In this document: positions 2,681 through 56,569 of the stretch, piece by piece
How the letters are laid out: every line of letters starts with the position of its first letter
Numbering within the stretch: position 1 is the stretch's first letter
Program-made: the position numbers and the translations under genes
The notes under the pieces: model-generated
Seen by the model: the letters and a program-made list of their open reading frames with translations, nothing else
What the model was told of the DNA's origin: nothing
Database searches by the model: none
From: Oculina patagonica
Taxonomy: Eukaryota
Length of the DNA: 64,000 bases
Assembly: GCF_052425735.1 (NCBI RefSeq)
Contig: NC_135759.1
Location: 45,942,001-46,006,000, forward strand
Direction: 5' to 3'

Positions 2681-4006
2681 TATTCTATTCTTAGTCCATA
2701 TATTCCTGATAAATATACTACGCAAGATTCTTTTTCTTTTGTTCAGGAGTTTCAAAATATTAGATCATACGACAAGTTTCTTATTTCATTTGATGTACAA
2801 AGTTTATTTACTAATATCCCTCTTGAGGAGACTATAAATATTGCAGTCAATACTATCTTCAAACATAATCCTGATTTTCCCATTAGTAAGGTTAGTCTTA
2901 AAAAGTTGTTTTCATTTGCTACTTCTCATACCCATTTTTTATTCAATGGTTGTTTTTATGATCAAATTGATGGGGTGGCTATGGGCTCCCCTTTGGCTCC
3001 TATCTTAGCTAACTTGTTTATGGGTTTCCATGAGGAACAGTGGTTAAATAATTATAAAGACTCCCCTATCTTATTTTACCGTAGATATGTCGATGACACC
3101 TTTTGTGTATTTAACAATGAGCAAGATGCCATGTTATTTTTAGATTACCTTAATACCAGACATCCTAACATAAGATTTACATTTGAAAAGCAGTTAGAGG
3201 GTAAATTACCTTTCTTAGATATTTTAGTAGATAACTCTTCTCCTATTTGTACCATGTCTATATATCATAAGAAAACCTACACTGGTCTTCTTACTAATTA
3301 CTTTAGTTTTACTTCATTTAAGTATAAAATAGGTTTAATTCATACCTTAGTTGACAGAGCTTTTAAAATCAATAACTCTAATTCGGGTTTTCGCAAAGAT
3401 CTCGCTAAATTAACAGAAACTCTTAAACGTAACTCATTTCCCTCCCACATAATTGACAAAATCATTAAACGTTATCTAGATAATGTTAGACTTAATTCCT
3501 CTAGTGATGTTAGTATTAGTAATTCTAACAACAACAGCACTCGCTATTTTAAACTACCTTTCATCGGCAATGTATCTAATATAACCCAGATAAAAATTAA
3601 ACAGTTATCTAGGCGTTTTTGCAGCGACTTAAACATCAAGTTAGTTTTTTCCTCTTTTAAAATAAAGAATTTTTTCAGTTTTAAAGATCCCATTCCTGAT
3701 GCTATTAGATCCTCTGTTGTTTATCAATTTACTTGTGCGGGATGTAACTCCCGTTATATTGGCGAGACTTCCCGTCATTTTTCAACAAGGATCAAAGAGC
3801 ATACTTTAACTGACAAAAATTCACATGTTTTTAAACACCTTAACAGTTCATCTAATTGCAAAAATTTATACACATCTGATTGCTTTAAAATTTTGGATTC
3901 TGCTCAAACCGTTTATTTTCTTAAATTAAAAGAGGCCTTTTACATTAATAGTTTAAAACCAGATTTAAACACTCAAGTGCAGCATGTCAACACCTTTTTA
4001 TTTTAA
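2681..4006 (+). CDS. Penelope-like RT/GIY-YIG ORF, N-terminally truncated, otherwise uninterrupted
   Basis: ORF 2906-4006 extends in frame upstream to the element boundary (SILSPYIPDKYTTQDSFSFVQE...). Confidence 0.88.
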   Translation, partial: YSILSPYIPDKYTTQDSFSFVQEFQNIRSYDKFLISFDVQSLFTNIPLEETINIAVNTIFKHNPDFPISKVSLKKLFSFATSHTHFLFNGCFYDQIDGVAMGSPLAPILANLFMGFHEEQWLNNYKDSPILFYRRYVDDTFCVFNNEQDAMLFLDYLNTRHPNIRFTFEKQLEGKLPFLDILVDNSSPICTMSIYHKKTYTGLLTNYFSFTSFKYKIGLIHTLVDRAFKINNSNSGFRKDLAKLTETLKRNSFPSHIIDKIIKRYLDNVRLNSSSDVSISNSNNNSTRYFKLPFIGNVSNITQIKIKQLSRRFCSDLNIKLVFSSFKIKNFFSFKDPIPDAIRSSVVYQFTCAGCNSRYIGETSRHFSTRIKEHTLTDKNSHVFKHLNSSSNCKNLYTSDCFKILDSAQTVYFLKLKEAFYINSLKPDLNTQVQHVNTFLF

Positions 4007-7322: not shown

Positions 7323-8912
7323 GCCTTTTATTACCTGCCTTTGAATACACAAACCACTTTTACGTAAGGCGGCTATCCATCGTCACGAAATCAGCGAATT
7401 CCTTCAGTGTCACTGCTATCGATCGTTGGTCGGCTTACGGCTAGTCAAACGATAAAAATACATGAGATGATCGCCAGCGGCAGCTGTGACCTTAAGCGGA
7501 GTATCTACCGGTATAATAATACTTTTCGTGGATATCAATGCTATTGCTTAACTTTACGCAGGCTTTACATTTGGTGGGCTTATTTTCGGAGATTGTTGGG
7601 GGGGGGGGGGGACTTTTTTTCGGATGACTTTAAGAGTACACTCTGTTTTTTTTTTCTATAATAATTTATTATAAGAATATCAAGGTTGGAATTTGCGAAA
7701 TTTTAAGAATATTTTTAGTTTAAACCCGAGGCTGAGATTTTGAAAATAATTTAATTATGTGTGTTGAATATTTGTAAATACAATACAATTATATGTTTCT
7801 AACTAAGCCATATAACATTCTTCCTTTCTCTAAACAGCGAAATAAAACCATAGAACGATAAAAACCTGTACTGGGCAAATGTCCGATGTTAGTGTTAGTC
7901 TGATGAATGAGTGTAATACACATGTATGGTATATATTACAAAAGACATGAACTACACCTATAATCTGAGAAGAGGAAAAACAATATTCTTATAACTAGAA
8001 AAAAGTGTATTTCCTATTCAGCTTCAAATATTAGTGCTCGGCAAGTTTTCAGTAGTCTATGTTATTAATTCAAGCGTTCTGGTAGGGTAAGCGCCTTATT
8101 TATTCGTTATCTGTAATTCTTGTTTATTTTCTGACATTATTTTGTACCAATTTTAAAAGGAAATGCGTACGGTATTTTCTCGCGTGACTAACTTGCGTGA
8201 CCGGAGTGTCGTAAAAACCACCCCACACTATAATTATTAATTTTAACATGCATTCGGTTTCCCATAAGTAATCAGTGTGAAAGTCGTTATTTTTAAAACG
8301 TGTTTTACATGGAAACATTATCTGAATTAGGTCTCTAAGTGTGTTTTATTTTTATATCCGTTATATCTGCTACATCTAGTTATACCGTGAACTACAAGGA
8401 AGTCGAAGAAAATTTGCATCACGGAAGTAATCCCCTGATTCCGGGGAAAATGTATCTTGAACATCAACAGCATTATTCGAAACTTTCTTTTGAGGTTGCA
8501 GACTTCATCAACTAAAAAATAATGCCTATAATGCAAGCCAAAGTGAAGTCAAAGCCAGACTATTGTTTTCAATTCTGAGAAATGGTCCTTTCCAAAAATA
8601 GCATTTATAAAATGTTTTGATTTGTGTCGACATTATGCAAATCTCGCGAGTTCCGAGAAAACACTCGCTTCTTCCAGGAATCGACACTAATTGCTCTGAG
8701 TCTGCGCACTATCGTTCACATTGTGTTGACAGAACTTTAAATGTGCTTAAATTGCAACTTTCGTAGATCCCTTGTATATTTTTTCTTGACGTTTGGATTT
8801 TGAGTTGGACGATGAGAAGAAGTTGAAACATCGCGAATGCGGACAGCAGTTTCAATATATTGTATGGGAACGTTTTTATCATTGTTTTGTCATTCTGGGT
8901 GCCTGTGTTAGC

Positions 8913-11900
8913 ATGGCGAGTCGGCGAAATCAAGGCCCGAAGCACAAATTTCCGTCTAAAGCGAAAGAAATCGCGCTGAACATAAACATTTGGGAAGATC
9001 GCTTCCGAACAAGCACCGATCAAGGAAATCGCAGTCGCCTTGAAGATTTCCAAAATCATCTCCGAGCTCATAGTTTCCAAGTTGAGAAAGCACACGATTC
9101 TGTAGCGGTTTCTGGAAATGCTAGGAACATAAACATCAAGTTGAAGACCACAGATTACGGCAACTCGAGCTTAGGAAAATTTTTCGAGCGACTTCGGCGA
9201 CAGTGGTGTTCGTCCATTTGTCGGCGCGGTGATTCATTCTGGTTGGAATCTGCTGAAAGCCCCAAAAATACTTTCAAGTACAAATCGGACGGGACAAGAC
9301 AACGGCTGCAAGCTACTTCCTTCAGCTTTGGAAGTTTTTACGACCGGGGAACCTATATAAAGCATTGGTCTAGTGATGAAGATGCATCCCTCATTGAAAA
9401 TGGAAATATTCAAAGCGAGTTTACGCACGATACGAAAACTCTGGAGATCTACTTCAAGGCTGGCTTTCCCGAGGGATTCAAAGAGGTTCGCATTGAAATG
9501 GAATACAGACAGTTTGAGAATTATGTTGTAGTGGATGAAAACAATCTAGAGGATCAAGCTGGAGGAACAGTCCACTTTTATTTTCCACTCCAGTGGCCTC
9601 CAAAAGTATCTGAAGGTAACTCTATAATTTTACAAATTAACTCATATTAACTAAATTAAATAATATAAGGGTCCAACAGATTACGAAAAAGAGAAAAAAG
9701 GTTTAAAGCTGAGCTCCAAGACCCCCTACCCGATTTAGTTCAAATTTTGTATCGTTATGAAGTTCTAGTCACCAAGATTCAGTTAAAGCCGCGCTGATAG
9801 ATGTCCGAAGTCTTTTGCAGCATATTCTTTTATCTCATCTCTTTGCGAATGAAAATTCTGCATATTCTTTTATATCTTACTTTAAAGGAGGAGGAGTTAC
9901 CCTAGCAACCGTATAGCAAGAGGGTTATCCAAGCAATTACACGTTTCTTCCTTAGTTTATCGATGTATTTACAATATTTGTATCCTTGTAAGTACGGACC
10001 GGAGTTTTGTTTCAACGTTGGAGTTTAAGCAGTTGACCGAGAAACGTGAGCTAATGTGGCAAGAGAGATCACAAGGCCCTCTTTCCCAAACGTTAACGAC
10101 GACGAAGACGATGATGGTGATAGAATACGGGCTCCTACGGATAACTCGCCTCAGTCACCCCCGGGACAACTTTATTTTGGCTACAAGAAGCCAAACAAGA
10201 ACATGCAATATACCAAGCCGACAAAACAAAAAAAATACGCCCCAAAAGACATAATATTAACTAAGGTTTTGTTTTGTTTATTTCTTCTGAAAGAATGCTA
10301 CTTTTTTGACCCTAGAGCTGGGGTAGCCGTTACCCTGCCTCGTTTTAAACAAGGCCTTAGTCTAGACGTACAATGGTCGTTCTTGTTGTCCCAGTTGTCT
10401 GACAAAGAATCTTGCTTATGCTAACTTTTAGTAAAGTAAATTAATGTATTTGTTCTGTTTTGTTTAGGGGTGATGAACATCAACGACTACACCAACTATG
10501 ACCGTCTGACGCACTTTTTAGGGTGCAGTCGAGAGATCCTGGGATCCAGTTCAGTATTGTGTTTGAGATTTGAATTGAAACAGCAACCGGAAGAAGACGA
10601 GGTAGATTCACCGCTGGGATTAATGGCCGACCTTTCTCGAAGAGGTAATCTTTAGTTAATGGTAAACTAAATAAGGAACTGTACACGTCTTTGTTTAAAG
10701 TTAAGGGGAGCAGGGGTGGCGCGGTGGTAAGAGCGCTCGCCTCCCACCTATGTGGCCCGGGTTTTTTCCCCTCCGGTGTATATTGGGTTGTTTTTTTTTT
10801 TTGTTCTCTTCCTTTTTCCGGTTTTTTCTCCGGGTTCTCCGTTTTTTTTCCCCCCAAAAAAACAAACTCTCCTTTTTCTTTTTTTTCCCTTGCCCCCTCT
10901 TTTTTTAAGTCTATCGATACCCAAAAGACGGCTAGTTCGCACACAAACCAGTACTTATAGTCTATCTTCGTAGACTATTACGACATTTCAGTTACCCAAT
11001 TCCGGAATATCTTCTAAAGCGTCTCACGTTTCGTTAGCCGCTGCTGCTTCTTTTTCTTTCCTTCCTTTNNNNNNNNNNNNNNNNNNNNNNNNNNNNNNNN
11101 NNNNNNNNNNNNNNNNNNNNNNNNNNNNNNNNNNNNNNNNNNNNNNNNNNNNNNNNNNNNNNNNNNNNNNNNNNNNNNNNNNNNNNNNNNNNNNNNNNNN
11201 NNNNNNNNNNNNNNNNNNNNNNNNNNNNNNNNNNNNNNNNNNNNNNNNNNNNNNNNNNNNNNNNNNNNNNNNNNNNNNNNNNNNNNNNNAAATTGTCTTT
11301 AAATTATGTTATCTATGCCTCGTTCAGCTTTGGTGTTAGGACTCCGAGAGTTGGTACTTCCCGGTCTCTTTTTACTTTAGTACCGTTAGTTCCCAGAGTA
11401 TAAAGAAAGTTTTTGCAAAGTTTTTGGGTCGACGCTCGGTAGTTATCGTTTATCTTGAAAACCCTTCCTAATGGACAATATATTGGTCCATATTTGCCAA
11501 TTTGCCCATTATATAGCCAAAATTCCTATGCAGCATGTTAGCGAGCTGAATTGTAATCTAATTTACCTGCTATTTATCTTTGTTAGGCTTTCCTGTCTAC
11601 TTTGCGGCGATGAGGACGAAATCCCCCCGAGGGCCCACAGAAGCTCCAAGGAAACCTGAGCTATCTGACCACAAGATCACGTACGCTTTGGAATGTTTGC
11701 TGTCTCGAGGATACAAAATAAGTGATCGTATTTCCAGAAGGTTTTACGACCTATTACGAAGGGCCACGGACAGGTACGAGTCGCTTCTGGAGAATAAACT
11801 GGTGTCCCCCGAAAAGGTCAGCAAAGCTTTGTACCGACTGGTGACTCTTGTGGAGAATGATCGTTTCTGTCCACTCGAGTACTATCTGGAAAGTCTACTG

Positions 11901-14900
11901 TATGGAGATATGAAGCATTTGACAGCATTTGAATTCGAATTGCCAAAGCACTATGTTTACATACCTCGTCTCATCATAACCCCAACCCAGGATTACCTTC
12001 TGCCCGCGGAATTAGTGGCAGAGAATCGTGTAATCAGAGATTACGGCCACAAGCAGGCGATGCGGATTGCATTCAGAGATGAAGACTTCTCCAAACTGGC
12101 ATCAACGCACCCAGAAGGCCTTAAGCACGTATTGAATGAGCGCGTGATTAACAAGCTTTCAAACAACATAGAGATCGCTGGGCGCAGCTTTGAGTTTCTG
12201 GCGTGTTCCAATAGTCAGCTGCGTGACCATGGCGCATGGCTGTACGCGACAGACGGCGAGCACCGAGTCGCTGACATAAGAGGATCGCTGGGGCAGTTAA
12301 ATGAGATCAGATGTGTAGCAACCTATGTTTCACGAATGGGGCAGTGTTTCTCATCGACAAAGGAAGCGGTCACAGTCAGTATTGAAGTTGGATGCAAAGT
12401 GGAAGAAATTCCAGATGTGGAGGTACAATACGACAACGTATATTTCGAGTGTTGTAAGAACCATAGATCCGGGACATACACCTTTACAGATGGAGTTGGA
12501 AAAATCAGCTCGGCTTTGGCCAGGAAAGTATGTTTATTTATTGTTTTTTACAATTCTTTATACACGGTAATAAAACATCAGGATTCTTATTATTAAAAAT
12601 GCAAATCTAATTACTTATCTAAATACCATGATTGCCTTCCTGAGATTACAGGATAGGCTGTTCCAGAGAGTTGAATCACTTAAGCTGAAACCTATTTTTC
12701 AAATAGTTCGTTCGTGGAAGAGGTGCAACTAGTTTTTTCACGGAGTCTCTCGAAGATTAGGGTGTTCCATTACTTACACCCGCTTTCAGTGTTACGTGCA
12801 TATCTATCTTTCTATATCCATTTTTCGATATCTTTTTTCGTCTTTTTTTTCGGCGTGTTTTTTTAAATTAGCCAATAAAAATCTATATATTCTTTTTTTT
12901 TTTTATAAAAATGTGAGAAAAGGTCAAAAATTTTTTTTTTGGGGTTTTTTGTTTTTTTTTTTTTTTTTTTTTTAAAAACAAAAAAATATATGGAAAGAAA
13001 AAGACAAAAAGGGCGTAAAAGAAATTTAGAAGATAAGTATTCAGGAACAAGACCATTCAAAGATTTATATGCCATTAAGGCTTCCTGAATTTGAGGCAGG
13101 GTACGCAAATCTTTCCAGCCAAGTTTTCGTTATAGGCACTTGGCATCCGCATCATAGGCCGAGGAAATAAGCACGCGAGTGGCACGGCAATAATAATTAA
13201 AATTATACAATAAGCTAATAGTACAATCAAGGAAAGATTTTACTCTGTGTGTATTTTTTTTATCTACTGTTTCACCTTACAAACGTACTAATAGACCTTA
13301 TTCGTATTCTCGGTATAATACGAAGGTATTGGAGTGGAACTTGCAATGGAGGCTCATGCGGGTAATCTTTTTAAATGCAAATGACATAAAGCTGTTTTAA
13401 TGATATTCCCCCGCATGAGCCTCCATTACAAGCTACTTCCAAGCCAATACCGAGAATACGAATATGGTCTATTAACGATAGCCGTCTTTTCAATTTTTTC
13501 AGGTTGCAGACAGCCTCGACCTGGATCCAACTCCGTCAGCCTATCAGATTCGTTTCGGTGGTTGCAAGGGGATGTTAGCAATTGATCCCAGACTTCCACA
13601 AGGAGAGGACCGAGAAATACTGCAATACCGCAAGAGTATGAAAAAATTCGCTTCACCACATTCTGCCCTTGAGATCTGCGAGGCCTCAAAACCAAGTAAG
13701 TAGCGGTTAAACCGTATTTATATTACAGCTTGATTTTTTTTTAATCATCCATAATGAATGCTTCATTGTATTGCAATGGATAAAAAATTGACCATGCAAA
13801 GCGTTCTTTTATTTGATGTGCAGTCATTTTATAAAAGGCTATGTAAACACTGTTACGACGTTTTGTTAGCTTCATTTCTAAACGGAGTTATGCAATAACT
13901 GAGAGAGTTTCCCCGCGCTCATTGGTCTATAGTCATTGGTCATTGAAAGTATAAACCATGAAAATTGCGTAACTTGTAACGCAAAGTAGAGCAGATTTCG
14001 GAAAACTAAAGACATTTTCGCAACTTTACCAAAAAACAGAATCCGGCGAGTTGCGAAGAGTCAGCTAGAACACTCAGGACGAAATTTTCCACACAATCAC
14101 CGACTTCAAGTGGAAAAAAAAGATCTTGCGAGCTGTCACACGCGCGCGATTTCACACTGATTTTTAAATTTATTCGCCGGTAGATTTTTTCATTGTCTAC
14201 ACTCTTACAAACTATAGAAATGACGCCATAAAATGTCCAAAACTTTGCAGTGAAACCACTCGCCTAACGGTTCGTGGTTCCACTTGAGTTTTGAACATTT
14301 TATGGCGTCATTTTTATGATCTATAAGAGTGTAGGTCGATTTGTTAAATGGAATAACGTTTTCCTTTTGCACCAAGGTATGCAGGACAAAACATGTGTAC
14401 ATTAGGTTTTTTTTGGCGGAACAAATTTAAGAGATAGGTAAAGTTCGGATAAAATCGTAATTATCTCATAATTTCATTTTGTTTTTATTTCAGACCTTTT
14501 ATACCTTAATCGTCAGTGTATAATCCTGTTGAATGGACTCGGAGTTCCTGATGAGTCATTTATCAGCCTGCAAGACAACATGCTGCGTAGCCTCGCCTTG
14601 ATGCTGCTCTTTGAAACGGTAGCATTGGATACTCTTGGTCGCGCAAATATCCCAGGTGGCTTGAAAATCACAGCATTGTCACGCAGTGGTGTAAACTTTA
14701 CTCGAGAACCGTTTTTCCGCTCCCTGCTCCTGGCAATTTACAAGAGCCGATTGGGAGACCTACTGCGGAGAGCCCGGATTGCTATCCCAGAAACCCATGG
14801 GCGCCTTTTGATGGGCGTCATAGACGAAACAGGTTCTTTGGAGTATGGCCAGGTTTTTGTTCGTTACTCCAAATCGGTCCGTGAACCAGGAAAAGAGCTA

Positions 14901-17900
14901 ATCACGCTGAAAGGCAAAGTGGTAATCAGCAAAAATCCCTGTTTTCACCCAGGTTAGTTTTTCAGACCCATAGCACAAATGTTTAATGAACATCTAATAA
15001 ACCAGTGTAATTGCTCTGAACCGTATCGCTTTAAATGAATATGGTATGATATGACATATCATGACCGTTAGCAGTGGTGAAAAGTAGGGTTTTGTAACAG
15101 TTGTAATTATGCAAAAGCTCAAGGAACTGACAAAGTGTTGAGCGAGACTTTGTCAGAATTTCATGCGTAATTCGTTTTGTGGCAAGCGAAAAATGATTTT
15201 ACATTAGCTAATCAGTAGCTTCGTTTGCAAGTTTGGATGGAAAATAATCAAAATAAACATCAATGTCTCTTTTTTGGAAGGCCCATGTCAGCCACATTTT
15301 AATGGTATAGTCCAATCCTTAGATTTTTTTCCTTTGTGGCATTATCAGTTACTATGTACTGATCTGTATCATTACACTGCTTCTTTCTTTAGGTGACATG
15401 CGCATATTTCAAGCCGTTGATGTTCGAGTTCTGCACCACTTGGTTGACTGCATTGTGTTTCCCGCCAAAGGACCCAGGCCTCACACTGATGAAATGTCTG
15501 GCTCAGACCTAGATGGCGACAAGTATTTCGTCACGTGGTATGACAAGCTCCTTCCACCAAGGGATGAGAATGTAGACCCGATGGATTTCACATCTCCAGA
15601 CAAAATAGTTTTGCCTAGACCTGTAGAAGTCTCTGACATGATTCAGTTCGTGTCGGATTACATCAAAAATGATCAACTTGGGATCATTGCAAATGCTCAT
15701 CTCGTGCATGCTGACCACGACGAAAAAGGTATGTCAACGCAATAACAATTTGTTATCTCTGGGAGAATAGGGCCATAAGCATAGTGTATGTACTCAATTT
15801 GATCCTTCTAAAAAATTCATTTTCTTTGGGTATGACGTCAAATGGCGTCAACAATAACTGGGTTTCAGTACATGTTCTTGGCGTCAAACACGACATGAAT
15901 CGATGATATATTCTAAAACAATAGCTTGATGGCAAGGTCAAGAATCTGGGACGAATCAGCCACTGAAAGTTTTAGCATCAAAAAATGAAACTTGTTAGTT
16001 TTCAAAATTGTAAAACCCTCATGGGGACTGGGATCCAACCCCTCCCCCTCCTTCCTTGCCACCCATGTACGTGTTGGGGGTTAACATAAATATTTTCTCT
16101 TTTGCTCTCGAGGCATATTTTCCGATGAGTGTATCGAGTTAGCCCACATGCACTCAGAAGCTGTAGATTTTCCAAAGACTGGGAAGTGTCCATCTCTTCC
16201 CAAAGAACTGAGACCTGATCAGTACCCAGACTTCATGATGAAACCCGGGAAACCTCGGTACAAGTAAGTAAAAGCTCACTAATATTGTTCATTTGCTTAT
16301 CTTAGTAATATTGTACTAATATTACACTTACTAATATTTTACACTTACTTATCTTGCTACTTTATTTCATATGCATGCAGACACAGATCTTTTTACCGGC
16401 CTTCAGAACTGTCACATAGGAGAATTTTTGTGTAATTGCGAGAAATTATTTTCACAGCCCTCTACGACCTCTTCCACATGTATCAATAGTTTTTTGTGTA
16501 AATGCCTGCTATAATGTATTTATTTAATTTTCATGGCAAAGAGAGAACACCAAAAAAAAATTAGGCTTTTAAACTTGGGACAAACTTTTGTAAAGACAGT
16601 CAAATCTCGTTATAGCGGACACGCTCGGGGCGTCGTTTAGTGTCCTTTATAGCGAGAGATCCTAATAGCGGGAGTCATTTCCAGTCAAACCTCTCTTGCT
16701 GGGGATCTGGATTTTGTCCGTAATAGCGAGTGTCCGCAATAGCGGGGTGTCCGCAAGGCGAGGGTTGACTGTACAGCAATTTTCCGACGTCTCGAACCTC
16801 CAAAGGGAACGAAAATTGGTTCTGGAAAGTTCGGCAAAATGGAGCAATAAGGGAAACGCGTTTTGGCTCGAGTTATTGGGAGGTTTGAGGAATTGGTATT
16901 CCACTGTAAAAGTATATCATTTTCATTTCCGTTATCTTATCACACGTTGCTAAATTTATATTTTAGTTCCCAAAGGATACTGGGAAAACTATTCCGAAAG
17001 TGCAAGTCGCTTGACCGTGCCCAGCAGTTCTCTGTTGATGCTTCTCAGACCCAGATCACCCCTGATGACGACATGATCGTATCGGGCTACGAGCAATATC
17101 TTGAAGAAGCTAAAGCAGTGAGAAACCGCTATAACACCAAACTGGAGGGACTCATGTCCTTATATGGATTACGAAATGAAGGAGAAGTCATCACTGGTTG
17201 TCTTGTGAGGGTAAACAATCGCCTTTCTGGCAAAACCGATGAGAAGTTCGAAGTGGCGCAAATGATACAAGCAAGTCTTTCCACTTTGCGCGCAAAAACG
17301 CGACACGATTTTTATGAAGAGTTTGGTGGCGAAGACGAGGTGATGGAAGAGTTTGAAGACAACGGCAGTTTTAGCGATGAAGTCCTGATGAAAGCTTCTG
17401 CTTGGTACATGGCAACGTACGGAAAAAGCGACGAAGAAGAGAATGCGACCGAGGTCCAAGTAAGAGCATCTTCGAGTGACTTGCAAGGAAATCAGCAAAG
17501 AAGTGAGGCGGGGGGTCAGGCGAGGCTGCTCAGTTTTCCGTGGGTTGTCGATCGAATCCTGGCAAAGATCAAGGACGCAAAGCAGAAAGAAAGGAAAGAG
17601 AAAGGAATCCAGAAACGCCATGCTCTGAATGCAGTTGGTGACCTCATAACAGTTCAAGCAGCCTACTTCTTTGAAAAGTTCCAATCAGATCTAACTGACG
17701 ATCGCGAGATGCGAATGGAAGAACGTGGTAAGCTACTGAGAATGTTACACCGCCTCCTTGGGGTAAGCCACGTTCCACGCCTGTCTTTATGTGATGCGTC
17801 GCTGACGGGAATCTCCGTGGGTGATGAAGAAAGACGCCATATTGAGATTTATGCACATTACAAGTGGAACGCTTCTGATCAAGAGCAGTATGAGTACCTA

Positions 17901-20900
17901 CGTTGGCTCGGAAAAGCACTGACTCAAGATGGTAAAGTTGAAATTCAAAGATACCCAGCTGCTTTGTATTTTCAACGTTCTCAAGGTAGGGAATAAGCCA
18001 GTAAAATATGCTTTGGTCTGACGTAGTTTAAATTGTATTTTACAATGGTATACTGTATTCTATTTTGCTCAAGGTTGCTTTTGTTCTAATCTTTTACCGG
18101 ATTTGACGTCTTCTGTGGCTTCGTACAGAATGAGTGGAGTATTTAGCTTACGCAGCCCAATGTGAACACCTTAAATTAAAGTTACATTCAAAGCACTAAA
18201 ATTAAAATGTTTAAATTACAATAAAAACTTACGAAATCAGTTGCATTTGCTGTTTTCTGCTGTGTTCCCCGTCGTAACATAGCAAAAAATATTCCTTTGC
18301 CCGCCGGTTTTACGTTTACTGAGCAAACAACCATGACAACAGGCGTATGTTACCTTTTTGTGGTACAGTGTTTGGAATCTTATTAACGGAATGGTAAAAG
18401 TTTGTTAAGATTAATTACAAGGCTGCTATGATAACAAATACGTTTAAATGTATGGTGCAAGAAGAAACATTCGTTTTTTGTCATCCAGGGTTAGTGAGAC
18501 AGCAATACTACATCACAGCGGATTCCAACAGACTGCTGAAGAGTGCGTATGTCGGTGTTCATGTTCAGCGGTGTCCTCGCCTCCTTCATCTTCTATTGAT
18601 TGTGATGCACTGGGGCCGGCGGCGGCGTCTTAATGGAAACTCAAGACACACCTTCCTTTCCGATGAAAATTTAGCCACACTGTTTGTCGCATTTTGTGAG
18701 AAATCTGGATTCATTCACGAGGTAAGTCGTTCTCAGAAGTCGAGATTTTGTAGATGTGGGATAATGATTCAGTGAATTAAACAAATTGGCCACGTTTTTC
18801 CATGGTTCACATTCTTTTAGACCATAGAAATGACGTTATAAAAGTTTCAACGCTCAAGAGGGAACATGGGCGTAGCAAGTAGCTTTATGTCTAAGTTCTG
18901 AACATTTCATGGCGTCGTTTCTATGAGCTATGGTCATGGAGACTTTGGCAATATGTCGTTGATTTCTTTTACGATAACATCAAAATATGCCGGCCAACTA
19001 AGGGTAAATCAGTACGTAAATCATTTCCTCTCCCAATTTAAAATAAACAAAACTTCATTTTATTTTTACAAGTCAATTTTCTGCTGTCGTTAGTTAAATA
19101 AAAACAAATTTCTTACAACACTGCATAATGAATTAATTTGTGGGAGTTCGGTGGTCTAGCCGTTTGCGGGTCTGAGTTCTTGAGATGTGGTGATCGATGC
19201 TTGGTCTCCATAAAAATTTTGTGGTGCGTCGTTACATTGTCCAATTGTTTTGGGCAACTTAAAAAATGCAAAAACCTGCAGCGGGCTAGATTCCTATCCA
19301 GTTAAAGTTGCCTTACGCTACATTTTCCGGAGTTAAGCGCAGTCACCTTGTGCCACTTAGTGCAACTGAAGGCTAAACCTTGCTGCTCTCATTTCTCTCA
19401 ATGCTATCTTTCAGGTTGGCAGCGACGAGCTGCAGAACTTTAGTTCCAGTCTCCTTGGATTACCATCCAGTGCTACACAGTCTGAGGCCGAGGAGCTGTG
19501 GAGCCGTGAAGTCCTGGGTGAGGCTTCTCAAGGAAGACTGAAAGGCTTCAAAGACGATACCACTCCTGGTCATGTACTGATCAAGTTCTTTGAGCACTAC
19601 AGCACACCAGCCGACAATGACCCCCTTCATATACGAGTCATGAAGAATCCAGTGAAAAGCAGTGAAACACTTTATCCAAACGTCTCTGTAGAAGAAAGTG
19701 GTCGCTTCTCTGACGCGGCGCTTCACGCATTTCACGAGCTTGCGCAGTGCTGTGGCCTGGACAGCCTCACTGCGTCACTGAACACAGAGAGCACGCGTGA
19801 GCTGCAAGAAACGCTGAACATGCCAAACACGACTTGGGGCGCACTTCGGTTTGCTGAGGAGTTTGTTCGAGTCAAGTTATCAACACTGACGACAGCACAG
19901 ATCACTTTACGGCCATGTAAGTCTTTTTGTAATAGGCCGCCTTCTGTGATTAAGGTACTTAAGCGGATAAAGAAAGGTTTGCATGCAATATCGCGCAAAA
20001 TTTATAAAAATAACAAGAATCAGTTTGTTGATTTTTTTTAAAAGTAGACGAGTAACTAGGGCAAGACATTTGGTAAAAATTGAAAAGCGATCTATGGTTA
20101 AAAATTTGTTTAAAACAAGCTTTTGACTACCAGTCTGTAGTCTTTATTTTTTGTAGTCTTTATTACTCGTTAAGGACTACAGACTGATAGTCGAAAGCTT
20201 GTTTCAAAAAAATTGGTAACCAGAGATCGCTTTTCAATTTTTTACCAATTGTTGATTTGCGTTTGCATATTCCCCTTGCGTTATTTTCGTTTTCTTGAGA
20301 TAATTTTCCTTATGCATAGCAAACGTTATAATCGCTGTTTGTATTTCAGTCTAACATGCATCACGACCATATTTATGTTTCCCTCGCTAAAAGAAGTCAT
20401 TTATATCGGCATCACGATTGCTGGAATCAGAACCACAAGTATTTGGTAATTATCTTTAGAAAGCTTACATAGCATATAAAGAACGATTTAATGCCAGTTA
20501 GTGTCCTCCAGGTTTTCACATACAAAAAAATACAACCTTGAAAAAAAATGAACGTCCTTTATTCATAAGTATAATATTTACACCTAGAGCTATGATGATT
20601 GTCTTAAAGCTATATTTATAGTTTTCTCTTTCGATATTTTTAGCTCAGAAGTCCGCCGGCTATATTCTTGAGGCAACAGGGAACTACCTCACACTGCACA
20701 GCGTTCAGAACGAACTGGAGAAGATAGAAGAAACCTGTACATCATACATCTACGACCATACTGTTAGTGGTGCTACTCGCTTCTTGTTCCTGGGTCAAAA
20801 CGGACCAGAAGATGCAGTTACTTTCAAACAGTTGAGAAAAGGCGACTTTGCCGTCAACCTCAATCAAATAAATGGACTTCTGTTGAGCCTTAATCTTAAC

Positions 20901-21803
20901 GATGCACCTGCTAGAGATTTCGCAGAAACAAAGTTCCGCAGCATGCTTTCATCCCAGCTGGAGGTATTCAAACGGGAATATCTGCCTTATGTGCATGGGA
21001 CAGACAGACTCAAAATCAAGGCGGAATTTGGAAGCATTTATGTTGAGAACGTACAGAGTCTGATGTCACGTGTTGAAATCATTGAGAACATCTTGAGTCT
21101 GCACGCGGATCCTAAAAACCAGCCAGGTAACAAGAAAAACCAACATTTGATGAAGCACAAGTTTATACCAATTTCACGTGGAGCTGATGGTTGGACTGCA
21201 GCGTTTGAATCAAGTCGCCAGGAGTCCGCCGAAGAAACGTACACTGTGGTGATGAAAGAAGGCAGAAATCACACTATAACCGTCATTTACGACAGGGATT
21301 TGCAGTTCAGTGATGTAGAAATTCCACCCATCAACTGGGTTGTAGTCGACGTCAAAGCTCCACGCCCTGCCAGGGCGAAATCACGTGACGTCGATTTCCG
21401 CGTCACCGTGTGTTCCGAGCGGAGGCTGGAGGGAGAAGAGAAAGATGAAGTTATGAAGTCGCCAAATTATGAAATCTTTAAGACGAAGTCCATCATCAGC
21501 AAGTCTCCCAATGGAGGTCCAGGACTGGAACTTGCAAACGAGTTCCTTAAGAAGGTGGCTTTCGTCCGCCATGATAAAACGACGATGTACCATATCTACA
21601 ATGGACGTTTGTGGCTCCAAGTGAAAGAGGTCCAAAAGTATGAAGTAAGAGGTACAAGGTTCCTTAACTCTCCCAGCAAGAACTTCACTGAATTGCAGAT
21701 ATGGGGATGGTTCAACGGCAAAGATGACGAGGAGGTGGCGATGAATGTTGCCAAAGACTTGTGGTCAGCGACTAAAAGGCTGCGACCACATATTAACGGC
21801 TAA
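8913..21803 (+). CDS. Eukaryotic (RNAi-type) RNA-dependent RNA polymerase with long C-terminal extension, 11 exons, ~1957 aa
   Basis: Exons 8913-9615, 10468-10644, 11587-12527, 13503-13695, 14494-14952, 15393-15728, 16113-16263, 16967-17985, 18489-18721, 19415-19916, 20644-21803; all GT-AG and phase-compatible (sum 5874 nt). Motifs: FLACSNSQLRD, SRMGQCFS, FTDGVGKIS, PSAYQIRFGGCKGML, LNRQ, KNPCFHPGD, catalytic SGSDLDGDKY (15506-15520), AVDFPKTG, YPDFM. Confidence 0.92.
10706..10930 (+). mobile_element. tRNA-derived SINE; 3' part corrupted by low-quality homopolymer sequence
   Basis: Head GGGAGCAGGGGTGGCGCGGTGGTAAGAGCGCTCGCCTCCCACC matches the cleaner copy at 45631-45894. Confidence 0.75.
11069..11289. 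other. Assembly gap (N-run) in RdRP intron 2
   Basis: Run of n. Confidence 1.
12600..13190 (-). mobile_element. Decayed 3' fragment of a CR1/L2-group LINE ORF2, interrupted by low-complexity sequence
   Basis: Minus-strand translations RATRVLISSAYDADA..LGWKDL..MAYKSLNGLVPEYLSSKF and LRDSVKKLVAPLPRTNYLKNRFS..LWN resemble CR1/L2 ORF2 C-termini. Confidence 0.7.
13289..13474. mobile_element. Foldback MITE (TAATAGACC...GGTCTATTA)
   Basis: ~28-bp TIR plus inner inverted arms (gcaatggaggctcatgcggg / cccgcatgagcctccattac). Confidence 0.8.
14205..14330. mobile_element. Palindromic MITE; related copy at ~18818-18940
   Basis: atagaaatgacgccataaaatgtccaaaact / agttttgaacattttatggcgtcatttttatg arms; similar arms recur at ~18820. 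Confidence 0.65.
16597..16908. mobile_element. Two adjacent Tc1/mariner-type MITEs (CAG...CTG ends, TA flanks)
   Basis: cagtcaaatctcgttatagcggac ... gtccgcaaggcgagggttgactgta, then tacagc ... ccactgta. Confidence 0.6.
20070..20248. mobile_element. Foldback palindromic MITE
   Basis: ~80-bp inverted arms (aaaattgaaaagcgatc...ccagtctgtagtc / gactacagactga...gatcgcttttcaattttt). Confidence 0.75.
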
Positions 21804-22018: not shown

Positions 22019-22779
22019 TGCGAGTTGGATTGTGGTCCTTTAAACTTCTTTTTGGTTAAACTGACAGTGAGCTGCTATCATTAATACATACTTGAATTAA
22101 AATATCCAGCTAAAACTATACAGACCAAAAAAAAACAAAGCTTAACATTAAGTGAAGTATTTTAGCAGTCTTCGTGCTGGCATTGTCAACTTTAATTTTT
22201 TAGGTATTCTGCTCTGGATTTATGGCCTGCTTTTTTAAGTTACACATTTGAAAATCATTTTTAGAAAGTTAGTTGTTTAACATATATATTTGACGAAATT
22301 ATACATAATTGAATTACAACAACGTAGTAGGTCATTTAGAGAAGGGAAACTGTATGATTATCTCGAATTTTCTACTTTTTAAGTCAGCAGACGACAAGCG
22401 GGGGAGATAAGTGACCCGCCGGAGGCGGAGACGGACAGGGCGCGGACGTGAGCACAGGAGAAACCGGAGGAACGGAGCAGGCGAACCCCCGGGAGGGGAA
22501 GAGGACGGAACAGCAGTCCGCGGGAAATCCATGATGACAAGTGGGTCACCCAGGAGACCACAAGCCAGATGAGCGGAAAGAGAAGGGCGCGACTGCACGC
22601 CGACCGATCTGTCCACCCGCGGACCACCCCGGCCGCACGCCCCCCGAGGGACAGGGGCAACAGAGCAACACAGCAGAGCAGGGACCGGGGACGCCGGCGC
22701 CCCCCCCCCCGTAGATTTTTTTACAAGGCAATAGAATTTGTTTTTTAGTTGCACAATATCCTGCAATACAACACATCAC

Positions 22780-53500: not shown

Positions 53501-56500
53501 ATGGAAGAGATTAAATTATGGTAGAAGGCTCATCATTCCCTTGCTATTGAATTACGTACATGTATAAATTTTGTTTATTATGATTTCAGGTTAACTTTCA
53601 ATTAACAGCATAACTTTTCTGCACTGGTACTGTGTATTTACTACTTACCTTAACACCTCTGGCAGTTTGCTTTGATATGCTCGCAAAGTCAGAAATAACA
53701 AATGCCACAAGATAGGTGCTCATGTCAACACTCCGTTGAAAGTGGTCAGTGCACAGCTCTGAAGCATCACCACACTGAAATAAAACAAAACAAACATGAG
53801 AAACAAACACTAACACTTGATGTAAATGCAATAATAACAACAATAACATTATATAAATGAAAAGAGTGCATGTACACAGTACATGTAGGCAGAAAAAAAA
53901 ACTTAAACTTCATGCAAGTGAAAAACTCTTACCCCATCAGTGCGGTTCAGTGGCATGTTGGCTAATGCTACATGATGTTTCTTTCGAACAATGACAATGG
54001 AAAACATTGCTTTCATGTTAGGTTCATCAAAACAAGGAAAGGCATTTCTGGCATCCGTCGGTTCAAAATGGGTTGTTGCAAGATATCTAAGAAAGCAAAC
54101 AACAGGACACGGAATTACAAAGTATGCAAAAATAATGTTGTTCCAAAAGAAATTAACTAATTAAATTACTGATTACTTAGAAATATGGCATAAAGTCTAC
54201 AACAAAAATTGATCCTGCTGTTTCCGGTACCCCAATAGTTGTGGGCGGTCTGGACTTCAAATGTTTCATGCCTTTACTTTTGGTTCCTGTCCCTTCTTTC
54301 ACATGTACAGTATGGTTTCTAACCCTTGGAGCTTCTTTGTAAAATATTGGGGAAAGTACATTTCTCCCAGTTTCTCCTAGTACCCATCACCAGCTGGTGC
54401 CATAGTCTTTTTTGGAAATACTGAATGTCTCATAAGATATTAAAATGTAGAACTTTCATACTAGTCCGTTGCCAATTGTTACACAACTGAAGATGTACAG
54501 GGTATAAACATTGTAAAAGAACTGTGCCTTTGAAGTAAAGGGCTTACATGTAAGTGGGTATACATGTACTGGAAACAAAATAAACACATGTATATTGAAG
54601 TATGCCGTATGTGATCTAATGAACGCCCACTCTCAATTTAACGCCTTGTATCTAATAAATGCCCCCCCTGAGGTGTAAAGTTTGTATTAGATGCTCCCCT
54701 CTTATAAATGCCCAGTGTCTAATAGATACTCCCCCCCCCACCCCCCTATCAAGAATAGCCTCTAGACGTATTTGCCAGCCACATTTTTTTCATTTTTGTT
54801 TTTCTTGTCAAACTCCTTTAAATTTAAAAGGCCGCTTTTATACGGCCGCCTTGCTACACTCTTTTTACTGTTATATCCGCTGGTGAGCGGAGTTGCAAAA
54901 AATGTTTACAGCTGTTGGACCAATTAACCAACCCAACCAACCATGTGAGTGCGACTGGGCTAGACACTTTACTTCCTGAATTAAAAATTCAGTTGTAAAA
55001 AGGGTGTCTAATTTCAAATGTTTAGTTCCTTTTCACCAAAATACAAAATCAAGCAAATTAATCATATTTGCATAGGGGCGGGAGATGTTAAAATAATTTG
55101 CATAAATTAGAAACATACTAGCTCTTGGCAGTCAAGGTTGATCCTTGTCAGTAACTTGGCTTTAATAAAATTATTATATATCGCAATGTTTTGAATGACA
55201 ATATTACGCACATCGCTTCTTTTTGGTAAAACACAAATTAACTATTGAAAAACCCGGATTTATCCGGAAACATTTTATTCGAAATTAAAAAAAATGCTGT
55301 AATTTTGTCAATTTTTCGTGTGATCTCTTGATGATCGGGATAAAATTAAATTTAGCAATTGCTTCCTTCGTGCTGTCGACGTTAAGTTCCTTGTTTGTAC
55401 ATTTGATCTCTCCAATAAAAATGGCAAATAAAGGTGATTTGTCAAGAAAAACCCAATGCATTAGATGACAAAAATACTCTAAGGAATCCACACCTTTCCT
55501 CGAAAATATAAGCTTTAAGGGTTAATTTACACAGAGATTTTGTAATGGCGAGCTAGCTATCACTGAAAAGGCAAATTAATTGAACAAGAAGAAACAAGAA
55601 AGGCCTCCCCGTTTCTGTGCAAACATCAATTGCAAAGGCTTTATTTTCCGTACTGCAAAATCTACGGTATACAAAAGCACTCACTACAAATAAATTCCTT
55701 TTAAATAAAGAATTTTCCACCGTGCACTTATCGTGTGTCTAAACAAAGACTACGCTATCATACAGCAGATGAGAACACCGGTAGTCAACAAAAAAGCCCT
55801 AGCGAAAATAAAGTATAAGAATGAGCGAAAAACCTTACCTTGTTTCACCTGATGGTGATTTATATGTGCTCAAATAGAATCCAGAAAGTCCTCTACTTAA
55901 CACGGAGTTGAACTCGATCACAAGAAAGTAGTATTTTCCACTTTGAAGTTCACTGCCGAGCGAGATGGAAATCATTTCTCCTGGTAGTCGAGAGATCCCC
56001 GTCACTTCCAATGGAACTATACTGTCTATGTCACTTCTATCTTCAATTTCTCCTACTGCTACGTTGAAATAATTGATTTTCTTTCCAACATGGAGTGTAA
56101 TATTATTGGCGGCTTCATTGCAGTAGAGGAGAGCGTCAACCTTCCCCGAGAAATTAAACGTTGTCAGATTAGGATGTAAATATACAAGATATTCGATCGG
56201 TGATATGTGTCTCGGTAGCCTTAATGAGTGAGATTCCTTATGATTCGCTTCTTTTTTGGCTACAGAAACATCTCTAGCCTGTTGAAAATCATGACGAGAA
56301 TTCTTCTTGCTGTTACTGTTTACAGTTTCATAAGATGAAGATGGCCGAGCGAAGACGACGAGAAGCAACACAGACAGCAACAGCAGAGCCGTTACGACCC
56401 CATAAATGGCCGTCTTCCCGCCGAACATTTCCCTCAGTTTAAGCACAAAGTTCGGGCCGCGGAATCTTTTCGTTCGATGGTGTTTCTTGTCGGGAAGAAG

Positions 56501-56569
56501 TGAAATATTGATGTGGTCTTCAAATTCCACGCTTGAGGAGTCAGATTCTTCCCGATGATCTGATTCCAT
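38596..56569 (-). CDS. M1 zinc aminopeptidase paralog 2, type II membrane protein, ~18 exon positions with a duplicated catalytic exon
   Basis: Exon 1 56569-55839 (acidic cytosolic tail, [31 protein letters not shown]). Then [28 protein letters not shown]+HELAH exon in two copies, [21 protein letters not shown]; last exon 38802-38596. Confidence 0.92.
45082..45236 (-). CDS. Alternative catalytic exon B of aminopeptidase 2 (DFPTGAMEN...HELAHQ), 155 nt
   Basis: Intact CAG acceptor and GT donor; phase 1 to phase 0. Confidence 0.85.
45631..45894 (-). mobile_element. tRNA-derived SINE with V-SINE-like central domain, well preserved
   Basis: A box TGGCGCAGTGG, B box GGTTCGATTTC, core TTTCTCCGGGTTCTCCGGTTTTCCTCC, AT-rich tail. 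Confidence 0.85.
46818..47932. repeat. Identical 142-bp direct repeat (46818-46959 = 47791-47932)
   Basis: Directly visible; each copy starts with CAAGCCCTG. Confidence 0.85.
48681..48835 (-). CDS. Alternative catalytic exon A of aminopeptidase 2 (DFAAGAMEN...HELAHQ), 155 nt
   Basis: Intact TAG acceptor and GT donor; phase 1 to phase 0. Confidence 0.85.
48945..52510. mobile_element. Non-autonomous Kolobok-like DNA transposon (~3.57 kb)
   Basis: TTAA on both sides (48941-44, 52511-14). TIR AGTGCTACTATGACCAAAATTTT vs AGTGGTACTATGATCAAAATTTT. Subterminal inverted motif TGACGTCATATGCGCATC at 49171 and 52277. No transposase ORF recognised. Confidence 0.75.
50555..51165 (-). mobile_element. Two decayed copies of a second tRNA-derived SINE family, nested in the Kolobok-like element
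   Basis: Shared aaaaggcaa(a/g)gtctgcatgcaag..gcccatca and cactgcacct..aatcaataca segments; CORE-like gttcttgggcaagac. Confidence 0.55.

Follow-up and report, generated by a model that had tools for sequence, protein, structure and literature searches.

We analyzed a 64,000-nucleotide (nt) stretch of the genome of the coral Oculina patagonica (NCBI RefSeq assembly GCF_052425735.1, contig NC_135759.1, positions 45,942,001 to 46,006,000 of the forward strand), referred to below as the window and numbered from its first letter. On the plus strand, 11 exons between 8913 and 21803 join into one open reading frame (ORF) of 1957 amino acids (aa) with a single stop codon at 21801-21803. The gene encodes an RDR-type RNA-dependent RNA polymerase (RdRP) whose frame continues beyond the polymerase. 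An initial annotation of the sequence had put this extension at ~800 residues; in the 1957-aa model, ~776 residues were counted after LSFPWVV (aa 1175-1181, near base 17529). The single reading frame, its conservation in relatives, and the triphosphate-tunnel fold of the last domain are directly supported here. The reading that we favor, with somewhat more confidence than an even chance would warrant, is a protein of ~1957 aa consisting of a PH-like domain, the polymerase core, the head domain, two long helices, a nucleotidyltransferase (NTase)-like region, an alpha/beta segment, and a tunnel domain that would serve as a non-hydrolyzing clamp for RNA 5'-triphosphates.

Polymerase and tail in one reading frame

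The PH-like family PF25359 matched an ORF at 8793-9650 of the plus strand (E value of 3.2e-08), and the RdRP family PF05183 matched three exon ORFs (8.3e-42, 1.7e-27, and 5.7e-38) and, at 2.9e-177, full-length relatives. The catalytic DxDGD loop is intact (DLDGD, aa 863, exon 6). The family RdRP_head (PF26253) was a precomputed match on all 37 close exon-8 homologs and gave no match in the local Pfam copy. The PF05183 core with DLDGD and the head are shared with the eukaryotic cellular RdRPs (Arabidopsis RDR2 and RDR6, Neurospora QDE-1, and Caenorhabditis elegans RRF-1, EGO-1, and RRF-3), and the PH-like N-terminal domain of metazoan RdRPs is also present in the coral gene. By contrast with the cellular RdRPs, the coral protein has ~780 further residues beyond the head domain. 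No significant match was found for the sequence of this tail in Pfam or among PDB sequences. Between the head and the rest of the tail, AlphaFold2 model 1 predicts, with low confidence, linker helices at model residues 9-30 and 35-82.

The window is eukaryotic in character, with ~38% G+C, short exons, and GT-AG introns. Splice sites were set by reading frame and by comparison with orthologs. The start of exon 1 (MASRRN) is the same N-terminus as that of the Stylophora pistillata protein PFX22350.1. Exon 2 was revised using the Acropora muricata protein XP_067037226.1, with whose residues '...YTNYKRVTHFLKCCREVLGS...SQKG' it agrees; in the Stylophora model this exon is shorter and begins near 10594. 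The junctions 17985/18489, 18721/19415, and 19916/20644, which the initial annotation had proposed for the tail, have GT...AG borders and compatible phases, and the spliced frame remains open up to the stop codon.

The gene model was then compared with annotated proteins of related species. It was 64.7% identical to the RefSeq protein of A. muricata (1937 aa), with an alignment free of gaps at junctions 2 to 10. Identities of the window model to the Acropora and scallop proteins are given by region in Table 1; against Acropora, they were 49-71% in the tail regions and 52% in the N-terminus. The Stylophora protein (GenBank, 'putative RdRP 1', 1651 aa) is collinear with the window across all exons, from 8913 to 21794, and has RdRP and PH-like domains upstream of its exon 11 match. 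It is shorter than the window model by 60 and 34 residues; with these missing, it was dropped as a structural stand-in for the whole tail. An exhaustive exon 11 search returned 15 relatives only, from corals, a scallop, and amphioxus. In the scallop Argopecten irradians (XP_069103154.1 and XP_069103165.1; 1998 and 1775 aa), the tail match is likewise preceded by RdRP and PH-like domains, and both XP_069103154.1 and the Stylophora protein have the same layout as the window model. A profile of eight coral tails matched the scallop (E value of 1.6e-28), beginning in the second half of exon 10 and continuing up to the C-terminus, and matched a free-standing amphioxus protein (P0015, Branchiostoma XP_078591657.1, 403 aa) over the tunnel part only (1.6e-17). 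Judged by this match, the tunnel module also occurs unfused, in a chordate.

In six other coral contigs (L001 and L012-L016), RdRP exons are followed by the same four C-terminal exons in unchanged order, exon 9 being 77 aa long in five of the six and exon 10 163-169 aa. In the window and in 38 homologous ORFs, exon 8 stays open from the RdRP head through ~150 residues of the tail. In a Logan contig assembled from a public run (SRR10968381, 1455 nt), which is 98.7% identical to the Stylophora protein, exons 10 and 11 are joined with no intron between them. This contig changes frame near base 844, in exon 11, and is missing ~11 codons of the genome-based Stylophora model; it may represent an alternative splice, a fault of the assembly, or a decaying copy. 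RdRP and tail are a single frame here and a single annotated protein in Acropora, Stylophora, and the scallop, as the proposal of a fusion had anticipated, and the same architecture is conserved in corals and a scallop.

An alternative would be two genes or two transcripts, with the RdRP mRNA ending in or just after exon 8 and exons 9-11 forming a separate downstream gene. An in-frame stop codon lies 11 nt into intron 8 (17994-17996), and retention of this intron would end the protein at 17996. In the GenBank annotation of Desmophyllum pertusum, the region is divided between short models, OS493_003290 (348 aa) and OS493_003320 (204 aa), and the amphioxus tunnel-domain protein of 403 aa stands free. 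However, the last ~150 codons of exon 8 already belong to the tail and are conserved in the 38 homologs, and two genes would cut in two the NTase-like region, which is distributed across exons 8 to 10. The Desmophyllum model itself links the exon 8 tail to exons 9 and 10; the RefSeq models of Acropora and the scallop and the Stylophora model are all fused; and exons 9-11 lack a plausible start codon with an N-terminus. We consider separate genes very improbable, and the sequence makes a two-transcript arrangement in this species unlikely.

By tblastn, no second RdRP copy was detected in the window. A word-indexed search with the Stylophora tail gave no match, because the full-length protein is not a cluster representative. 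On an ENA contig of 1,029,975 bp (proteins P0045, P0049, P0113, and P0110), several distinct exon-8 and exon-10 homologs were found. Because these lie on one contig, some corals probably carry tandem RdRP paralogs with the tail. At one of the coral loci (L013:1-9000), the first 9 kb before the conserved head-and-tail exons lack RdRP catalytic exons, and ORFs matching a Pox_A32-like ATPase and Endonuclease_7 are present there; this locus may be a truncated paralog or contain a large insertion in the gene.

The tunnel domain and the regions preceding it

The structure of exon 11 was predicted with AlphaFold2 from a 15-sequence alignment, giving a predicted local distance difference test (pLDDT) score of 79.8 and a predicted template modeling (pTM) score of 0.82. 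In a Foldseek search of the PDB, the best matches were to trypanosome RESC1-RESC2 (GAP1/GAP2): 8cdp_A with an E value of 6.9e-13 (TM scores of 0.52/0.62), 8cdp_B with 1.2e-12, and 8fn6_1 with 3.5e-12. These were followed by Schizosaccharomyces pombe Pct1 (5.4e-07), yeast Cet1 (1.7e-05), and the mimivirus triphosphatase (5.8e-04), with Trypanosoma cruzi Cet1, Mediator Med18/20, archaeal CYTH proteins, and thiamine triphosphatase among the further matches. The Foldseek probability was 1.00 for Pct1, Cet1, the mimivirus and T. cruzi enzymes, the CYTH proteins, and thiamine triphosphatase. Among the predicted viral structures of BFVD, giant-virus capping triphosphatases were matched, from 1.8e-06 and likewise with a probability of 1.00. 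The triphosphate-tunnel-like module named in the initial annotation is borne out at the level of the fold by the pLDDT of 79.8 and the Foldseek probability of 1.0, and a Cet1/RESC-type tunnel fold for the last domain is well supported by the predicted structure.

The barrel is common to the domain, to Cet1 and Pct1, and to the giant-virus capping RNA triphosphatases of the triphosphate-tunnel superfamily, while the metal-binding motif A differs. The first long strand reads K1695-I-K1697-A-E1699-F-G, against E-x-E-x-K-F-G in Cet1, where the equivalence of the strands was set by the pattern '..FG' and not by superposition. Across the family, the two motif A glutamate positions vary (K/R/T/D/E and K/T/R/H/S). 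Cet1 is inactivated by mutation of any one of its three metal-binding glutamates; two of these are absent from RESC1 and RESC2, and 5'-triphosphate RNA is nevertheless bound by RESC2 (PMC10201420). Because the ExExK metal site is replaced by KIKAE, catalysis has probably been lost, and from its sequence the tunnel domain probably binds rather than hydrolyzes. Any 5'-end handling of the kind proposed in the initial annotation is speculative and, with ExExK absent, would consist of binding and not of hydrolysis.

Other residues are kept. H1689, G1690, D1822, R1824, and R1831 are invariant and D1807 and K1809 near-invariant (alignment A7), and position 1921 is E or D in 9 of 13 sequences. The D-x-R...R and D-x-K residues lie on strands with hydrophobic alternate residues. 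This alternation, from which alone their orientation was read, fits D1822, R1824, R1831, D1807, and K1809 as candidate residues of the tunnel lining.

The likeness to RESC1-RESC2 (PDB 8cdp and 8fn6) extends over ~364 columns at TM scores of 0.52-0.62, and the coral and trypanosome domains are alike in being Cet1-like tunnel barrels with a loss of metal-binding glutamates. They differ in sequence, with 10-12% identity in the structural alignments, and when PDB sequences were searched with profiles and single sequences, RESC chains were absent at E values up to 10. In kinetoplastids, RESC is a mitochondrial heterodimer that stands free, whereas the coral domain is fused to an animal RdRP and its ligand binding is presumed by analogy.

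The middle region of the tail is a putative and likely, though unproven, NTase fold of the Cid1/GLD-2 type, as judged from a predicted model of low confidence. AlphaFold2 model 1, made from the eight-species alignment A5, had a pLDDT of 51.5 and was confident at residues 120-160 only. A5 is shallow and was the sole alignment handled correctly by MAFFT; in A1, A3, A4, and A6, exon fragments were misplaced when groups were unbalanced. The predicted order of strands and helices in the pLDDT 51.5 model agrees with a Pol-beta NTase fold plus a helical PAP-associated domain. The top 50 Foldseek matches of this model were mostly NTase-fold proteins, all with E values of 0.26 or higher, with Cid1, GLD-2, and URT1 on top and TdT, Pol beta, OAS, mtPAP, TUT1/4/7, and RelA/SAS synthetases also present. 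When the A5 profile was run against PDB sequences, the top two matches were to GLD-2 over the PAP-associated region (0.25 and 0.33), and PAP_assoc (PF03828) matched a Stylophora segment at 0.057, below the gathering score. DUF7752 gave a weak match on exon 9 (5e-4); the weak tail matches to DUF7752, DUF7903, and DUF7636 were not interpretable, and no mention of these families was found in the literature. For the NTase-like module of the initial annotation, the preponderance of NTase-fold proteins among the Foldseek matches speaks in its favor, and E values of at least 0.26, the pLDDT of 51.5, and sequence scores at noise level speak against it.

The motifs of this region were located by eye in alignment A9: LCDAS at 1261, HIEIY at 1278, ITADSN at 1335, MHWGRRRR at 1366, and TPGHVLIKFF at 1454. 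The coral sequences, also read by eye, agree with the NTase pattern: 'LFGSS/FGAS/FGNS...TG', '..EIY..', 'ITADSN', 'LLHLLLIVMHWGRRR...FLSDENLATLF', and 'TPGHVLIKFFEHYS'. In the place of hG[GS], the window has L-C-D-A-S and its relatives LFGSS (locus L016), FGAS, FGNS, or CGAS. H1278-I-E1280 stands in the place of DxD, and D1338 of ITADSN is kept, with the register set by eye. Because hG[GS] and DxD read CDAS and HIE, a working tailing enzyme is unlikely, and so is any catalysis by the NTase-like region of this copy.

Between this region and the tunnel domain lies the small alpha/beta segment, which crosses the exon 10/11 junction and had been called KH-like. In model 1, it is predicted to consist of a helix, two strands, and a helix (pLDDT of ~58-70). 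It is conserved in the scallop ('LSEETGAEVSIRRK...GLILEAWG') and is reminiscent of the latter half of a KH domain, above all in the scallop, where 'LSEETGAEVSI' is the sole pattern of this kind. No KH family was found in Pfam at E values up to 10 in the three segments scanned, and F-A-E-E occupies the position expected for the GXXG loop. The resemblance is one of pattern, seen by eye, and from the sequence a KH-like module is not established.

Possible roles of the tail

Unprimed synthesis by the polymerase would give products that begin with a 5'-triphosphate. In the reading that we favor, the tunnel domain would clamp the 5'-triphosphate end of an RNA without hydrolyzing it, much as guide RNA is gripped by RESC2. 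The RNA kept on the enzyme in this way would be either the product or a triphosphorylated template, such as a viral one. The NTase-like region would bind RNA or serve as a scaffold and would not be a tailing enzyme. That the last domain most likely holds a triphosphorylated RNA end follows from two considerations, because unprimed products are 5'-triphosphorylated and because the closest structure binds 5'-triphosphate RNA. What we infer from the features described above is the binding of a ligand, the absence of catalysis, and whatever link to a small-RNA pathway there may be.

Several results weigh against this assignment of parts. A tunnel fold is no proof of phosphate binding, since Med18/Med20 share the fold and appear among the Foldseek matches. 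None of the methods used gave a significant score for the NTase assignment. PAP_assoc was found in 1 of 25 exon-10 homologs only, at an E value of 0.082 and below the gathering score. The scallop was added (A9) to sharpen the NTase profile, and this attempt was abandoned: the scallop was misaligned, and GLD-2 was lost, with unrelated matches of equal strength in its place, for which reason the GLD-2 match is considered noise level. As for the gene itself, junctions 8/9 and 9/10 rest on the gene models of other species, and the frameshift in exon 11 of the Stylophora contig may mean that some copies are decaying.

RdRPs are widespread in animals (PMC6396948), and the tail offers a concrete lead on their role outside nematodes, one that lends itself to bench experiments. 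In Nematostella, the single cnidarian tested, there are four RdRPs, and three of them are induced by a viral double-stranded RNA (dsRNA) mimic, and no secondary small interfering RNAs (siRNAs) were seen even after RppH treatment (PMC12768352). The amphioxus RdRPs showed no role in RNA interference (RNAi) (PMC6396948). In view of both, the term 'RNAi amplification machine', under which the gene was initially annotated, is speculative.

We weighed three other functions for the tail. It could be enzymatically active, combining a terminal NTase that tails templates or products with an RNA 5'-triphosphatase that makes pp-RNA or p-RNA from ppp-RNA. More of the NTase signature is preserved in relatives, with LFGSS (L016), FGAS/FGNS, an invariant E in '..EIY..', and an invariant D in 'ITADSN'; the scallop 'FTG...REIDV' is, by eye, near G...DxD, and the tunnel retains several invariant charged residues. 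The window motifs are nevertheless CDAS and HIE, with the first carboxylate missing, and the first-strand tunnel glutamates are K and K at positions that vary in the family, whereas any one of these glutamates is essential in Cet1 (PMC10201420). An active tail seems improbable to us. A second proposal makes the protein an immune sensor-effector, the tunnel sensing non-self RNA by its 5'-triphosphate and an OAS/cGAS-like NTase part responding to dsRNA made by the polymerase. The induction of three of the four Nematostella RdRPs by the viral mimic in the absence of secondary siRNAs (PMC12768352) would suit it, as would the presence of OAS1 and OAS2 among the Foldseek matches for model 1. Cid1, GLD-2, and URT1 rank above OAS, though, none of them significantly; the sole Pfam family touched is PAP_assoc; and the catalytic residues are degenerate here. 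We give the proposal as a whole as little weight as an active tail. For the tunnel itself, recognition of non-self ppp-RNA fits equally well as the holding of an RNA end.

The tail could also be a structural or dimerization scaffold that binds no RNA end, like Mediator Med18/Med20. Med18/Med20 are significant Foldseek matches (4.6e-04 and weaker), both putative enzymes have degenerate catalytic motifs, and Cet1 and RESC1-RESC2 are dimeric (PMC10201420). Against a mere scaffold, RESC and the RNA triphosphatases score far above Mediator (6.9e-13 versus 4.6e-04), and invariant Arg, Lys, and Asp residues are placed on the barrel strands; we think it quite unlikely, more so than either of the preceding two.

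Returning to the non-hydrolyzing clamp, corals and some molluscs might possess an RdRP with its own 5'-triphosphate reader (a RESC2-like inactive tunnel) and a pseudo-nucleotidyltransferase, working in a pathway distinct from the siRNA amplification of the nematode type. We offer this tentatively and regard it as doubtful. If true, the polymerase would, for example, be recruited to triphosphorylated viral RNA or retain its own unprimed product, and the response of cnidarian RdRPs to viral mimics without secondary siRNAs would be accounted for.

RdRPs are known to work with NTases of the Cid1 family, as in the S. pombe complex RDRC (Rdp1-Cid12-Hrr1) and in Tetrahymena Rdr1-Rdn1/2. If the middle region is of the Cid1/GLD-2 type, the coral fusion would be the same partnership in one chain, a natural fusion of RdRP and NTase comparable with these complexes and with C. 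elegans MUT-2/RDE-3, which feeds RRF-1. The NTases of those systems are separate, active enzymes, whereas the coral region is a putative fold with degenerate catalytic motifs. The C. elegans context of MUT-2 is described elsewhere (bioRxiv 10.64898/2026.09.04.749402). In the RRF-3/Dicer pathway of C. elegans, the RNA polyphosphatase PIR-1 handles the 5'-triphosphates that RdRP products carry (bioRxiv 10.1101/2020.08.03.235143), a functional parallel to a triphosphate-end module beside an RdRP. Unlike the coral tunnel, PIR-1 is an active enzyme and a protein of its own, with the unrelated fold of a cysteine phosphatase.

No description of this architecture came up in literature text searches, which do not amount to a proof of absence given their incomplete coverage of subscription journals. 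The PH-like and head domains are represented by Pfam families, and none matches the tail above threshold. The proteins are already in RefSeq and GenBank ('uncharacterized protein', 'putative RdRP 1') with the tail unnamed, so what is presented here is a new annotation and a new hypothesis on a gene already recorded. RNA triphosphatases of the tunnel type are usually said to be confined to viruses, fungi, and protozoa and to be lacking in animals (PMC10201420), where the tail would place a Cet1/RESC-type tunnel domain.

Features of the gene and its surroundings

Table 1. Exons, predicted protein regions, and assembly gap of the RdRP gene in window coordinates, with identity of the window model to the Acropora and scallop proteins
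Feature	Coordinates	Strand	Content	Acropora	Scallop
Exon 1	8913-9615	+	start codon and N-terminal region, metazoan RdRP-associated PH-like domain; donor GTAACT at 9616		
Exon 2	10468-10644	+	59 aa, 5' of assembly gap; acceptor AG 10466-10467, donor GTAATC at 10645		
Exons 3-7	11587-12527, 13503-13695, 14494-14952, 15393-15728, 16113-16263	+	RdRP catalytic core		
Exon 8	16967-17985	+	RdRP head, linker helices, start of NTase-like region		
Exon 9	18489-18721	+			
Exon 10	19415-19916	+			
Exon 11	20644-21803	+	includes stop codon		
N-terminus				52%	23%
RdRP catalytic core, exons 3-7	11587-16263	+	PF05183, DLDGD	77%	50%
RdRP C-terminal head domain, exon 8 first part	16967-17549	+	ends at LSFPWVV	70%	47%
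Linker helices, exon 8 middle	17550-17756	+	aa ~1182-1250, between head and tail	61%	19%
NTase-like region	17757-17985 (exon 8 end), 18489-18721 (exon 9), 19415-19807 (most of exon 10)	+	aa ~1251-1535	60%	19%
Small alpha/beta segment	19808-19916 and 20644-20745	+	aa ~1536-1605, across exon 10/11 junction	71%	30%
Triphosphate-tunnel fold domain	20746-21803	+	aa ~1606-1957 and stop codon	49%	24%
Assembly gap (N run)	11069-11289	.	within intron 2 (10645-11586)		

The assembly gap in intron 2 was considered as the site of a hidden exon, and this was ruled out: the Stylophora and Acropora residues are all covered by exons 1, 2, and 3, and from this comparison the gap appears to conceal no coding sequence. 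Directly before it, at 10690-10975, lies a T-rich low-complexity stretch that is open in several frames on both strands, with F/K/G-rich translations; it is probably a repeat that broke the assembly. A second gap of 133 N (29380-29512) lies outside the RdRP gene.

Three overlapping G+C-rich ORFs with Gly/Pro/Arg/Ala-rich translations lie on the minus strand at 22332-22779, immediately downstream of the gene, where the G+C content of the window is highest (0.44). No Pfam match was found for the largest of them (22332-22766), and the cluster may be a repeat or a promoter region rich in CpG. Scans against Rfam and for tRNAs gave nothing in the window. Upstream of the gene, a plus-strand ORF of 366 aa at 2906-4006 gave weak matches to RVT_1 (E value of 1.9e-06) and a GIY-YIG endonuclease (2.2e-04), a pairing typical of a Penelope-like retroelement fragment. 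Farther downstream, M1 aminopeptidase N-terminal domains were detected on the minus strand at 34621-35301 (1.2e-17) and 55835-56569 (2.3e-09), which probably belong to two tandem aminopeptidase genes. At the coral locus L016, an ERAP1_C ORF is also located on the minus strand downstream of the RdRP, which suggests a conserved gene order.

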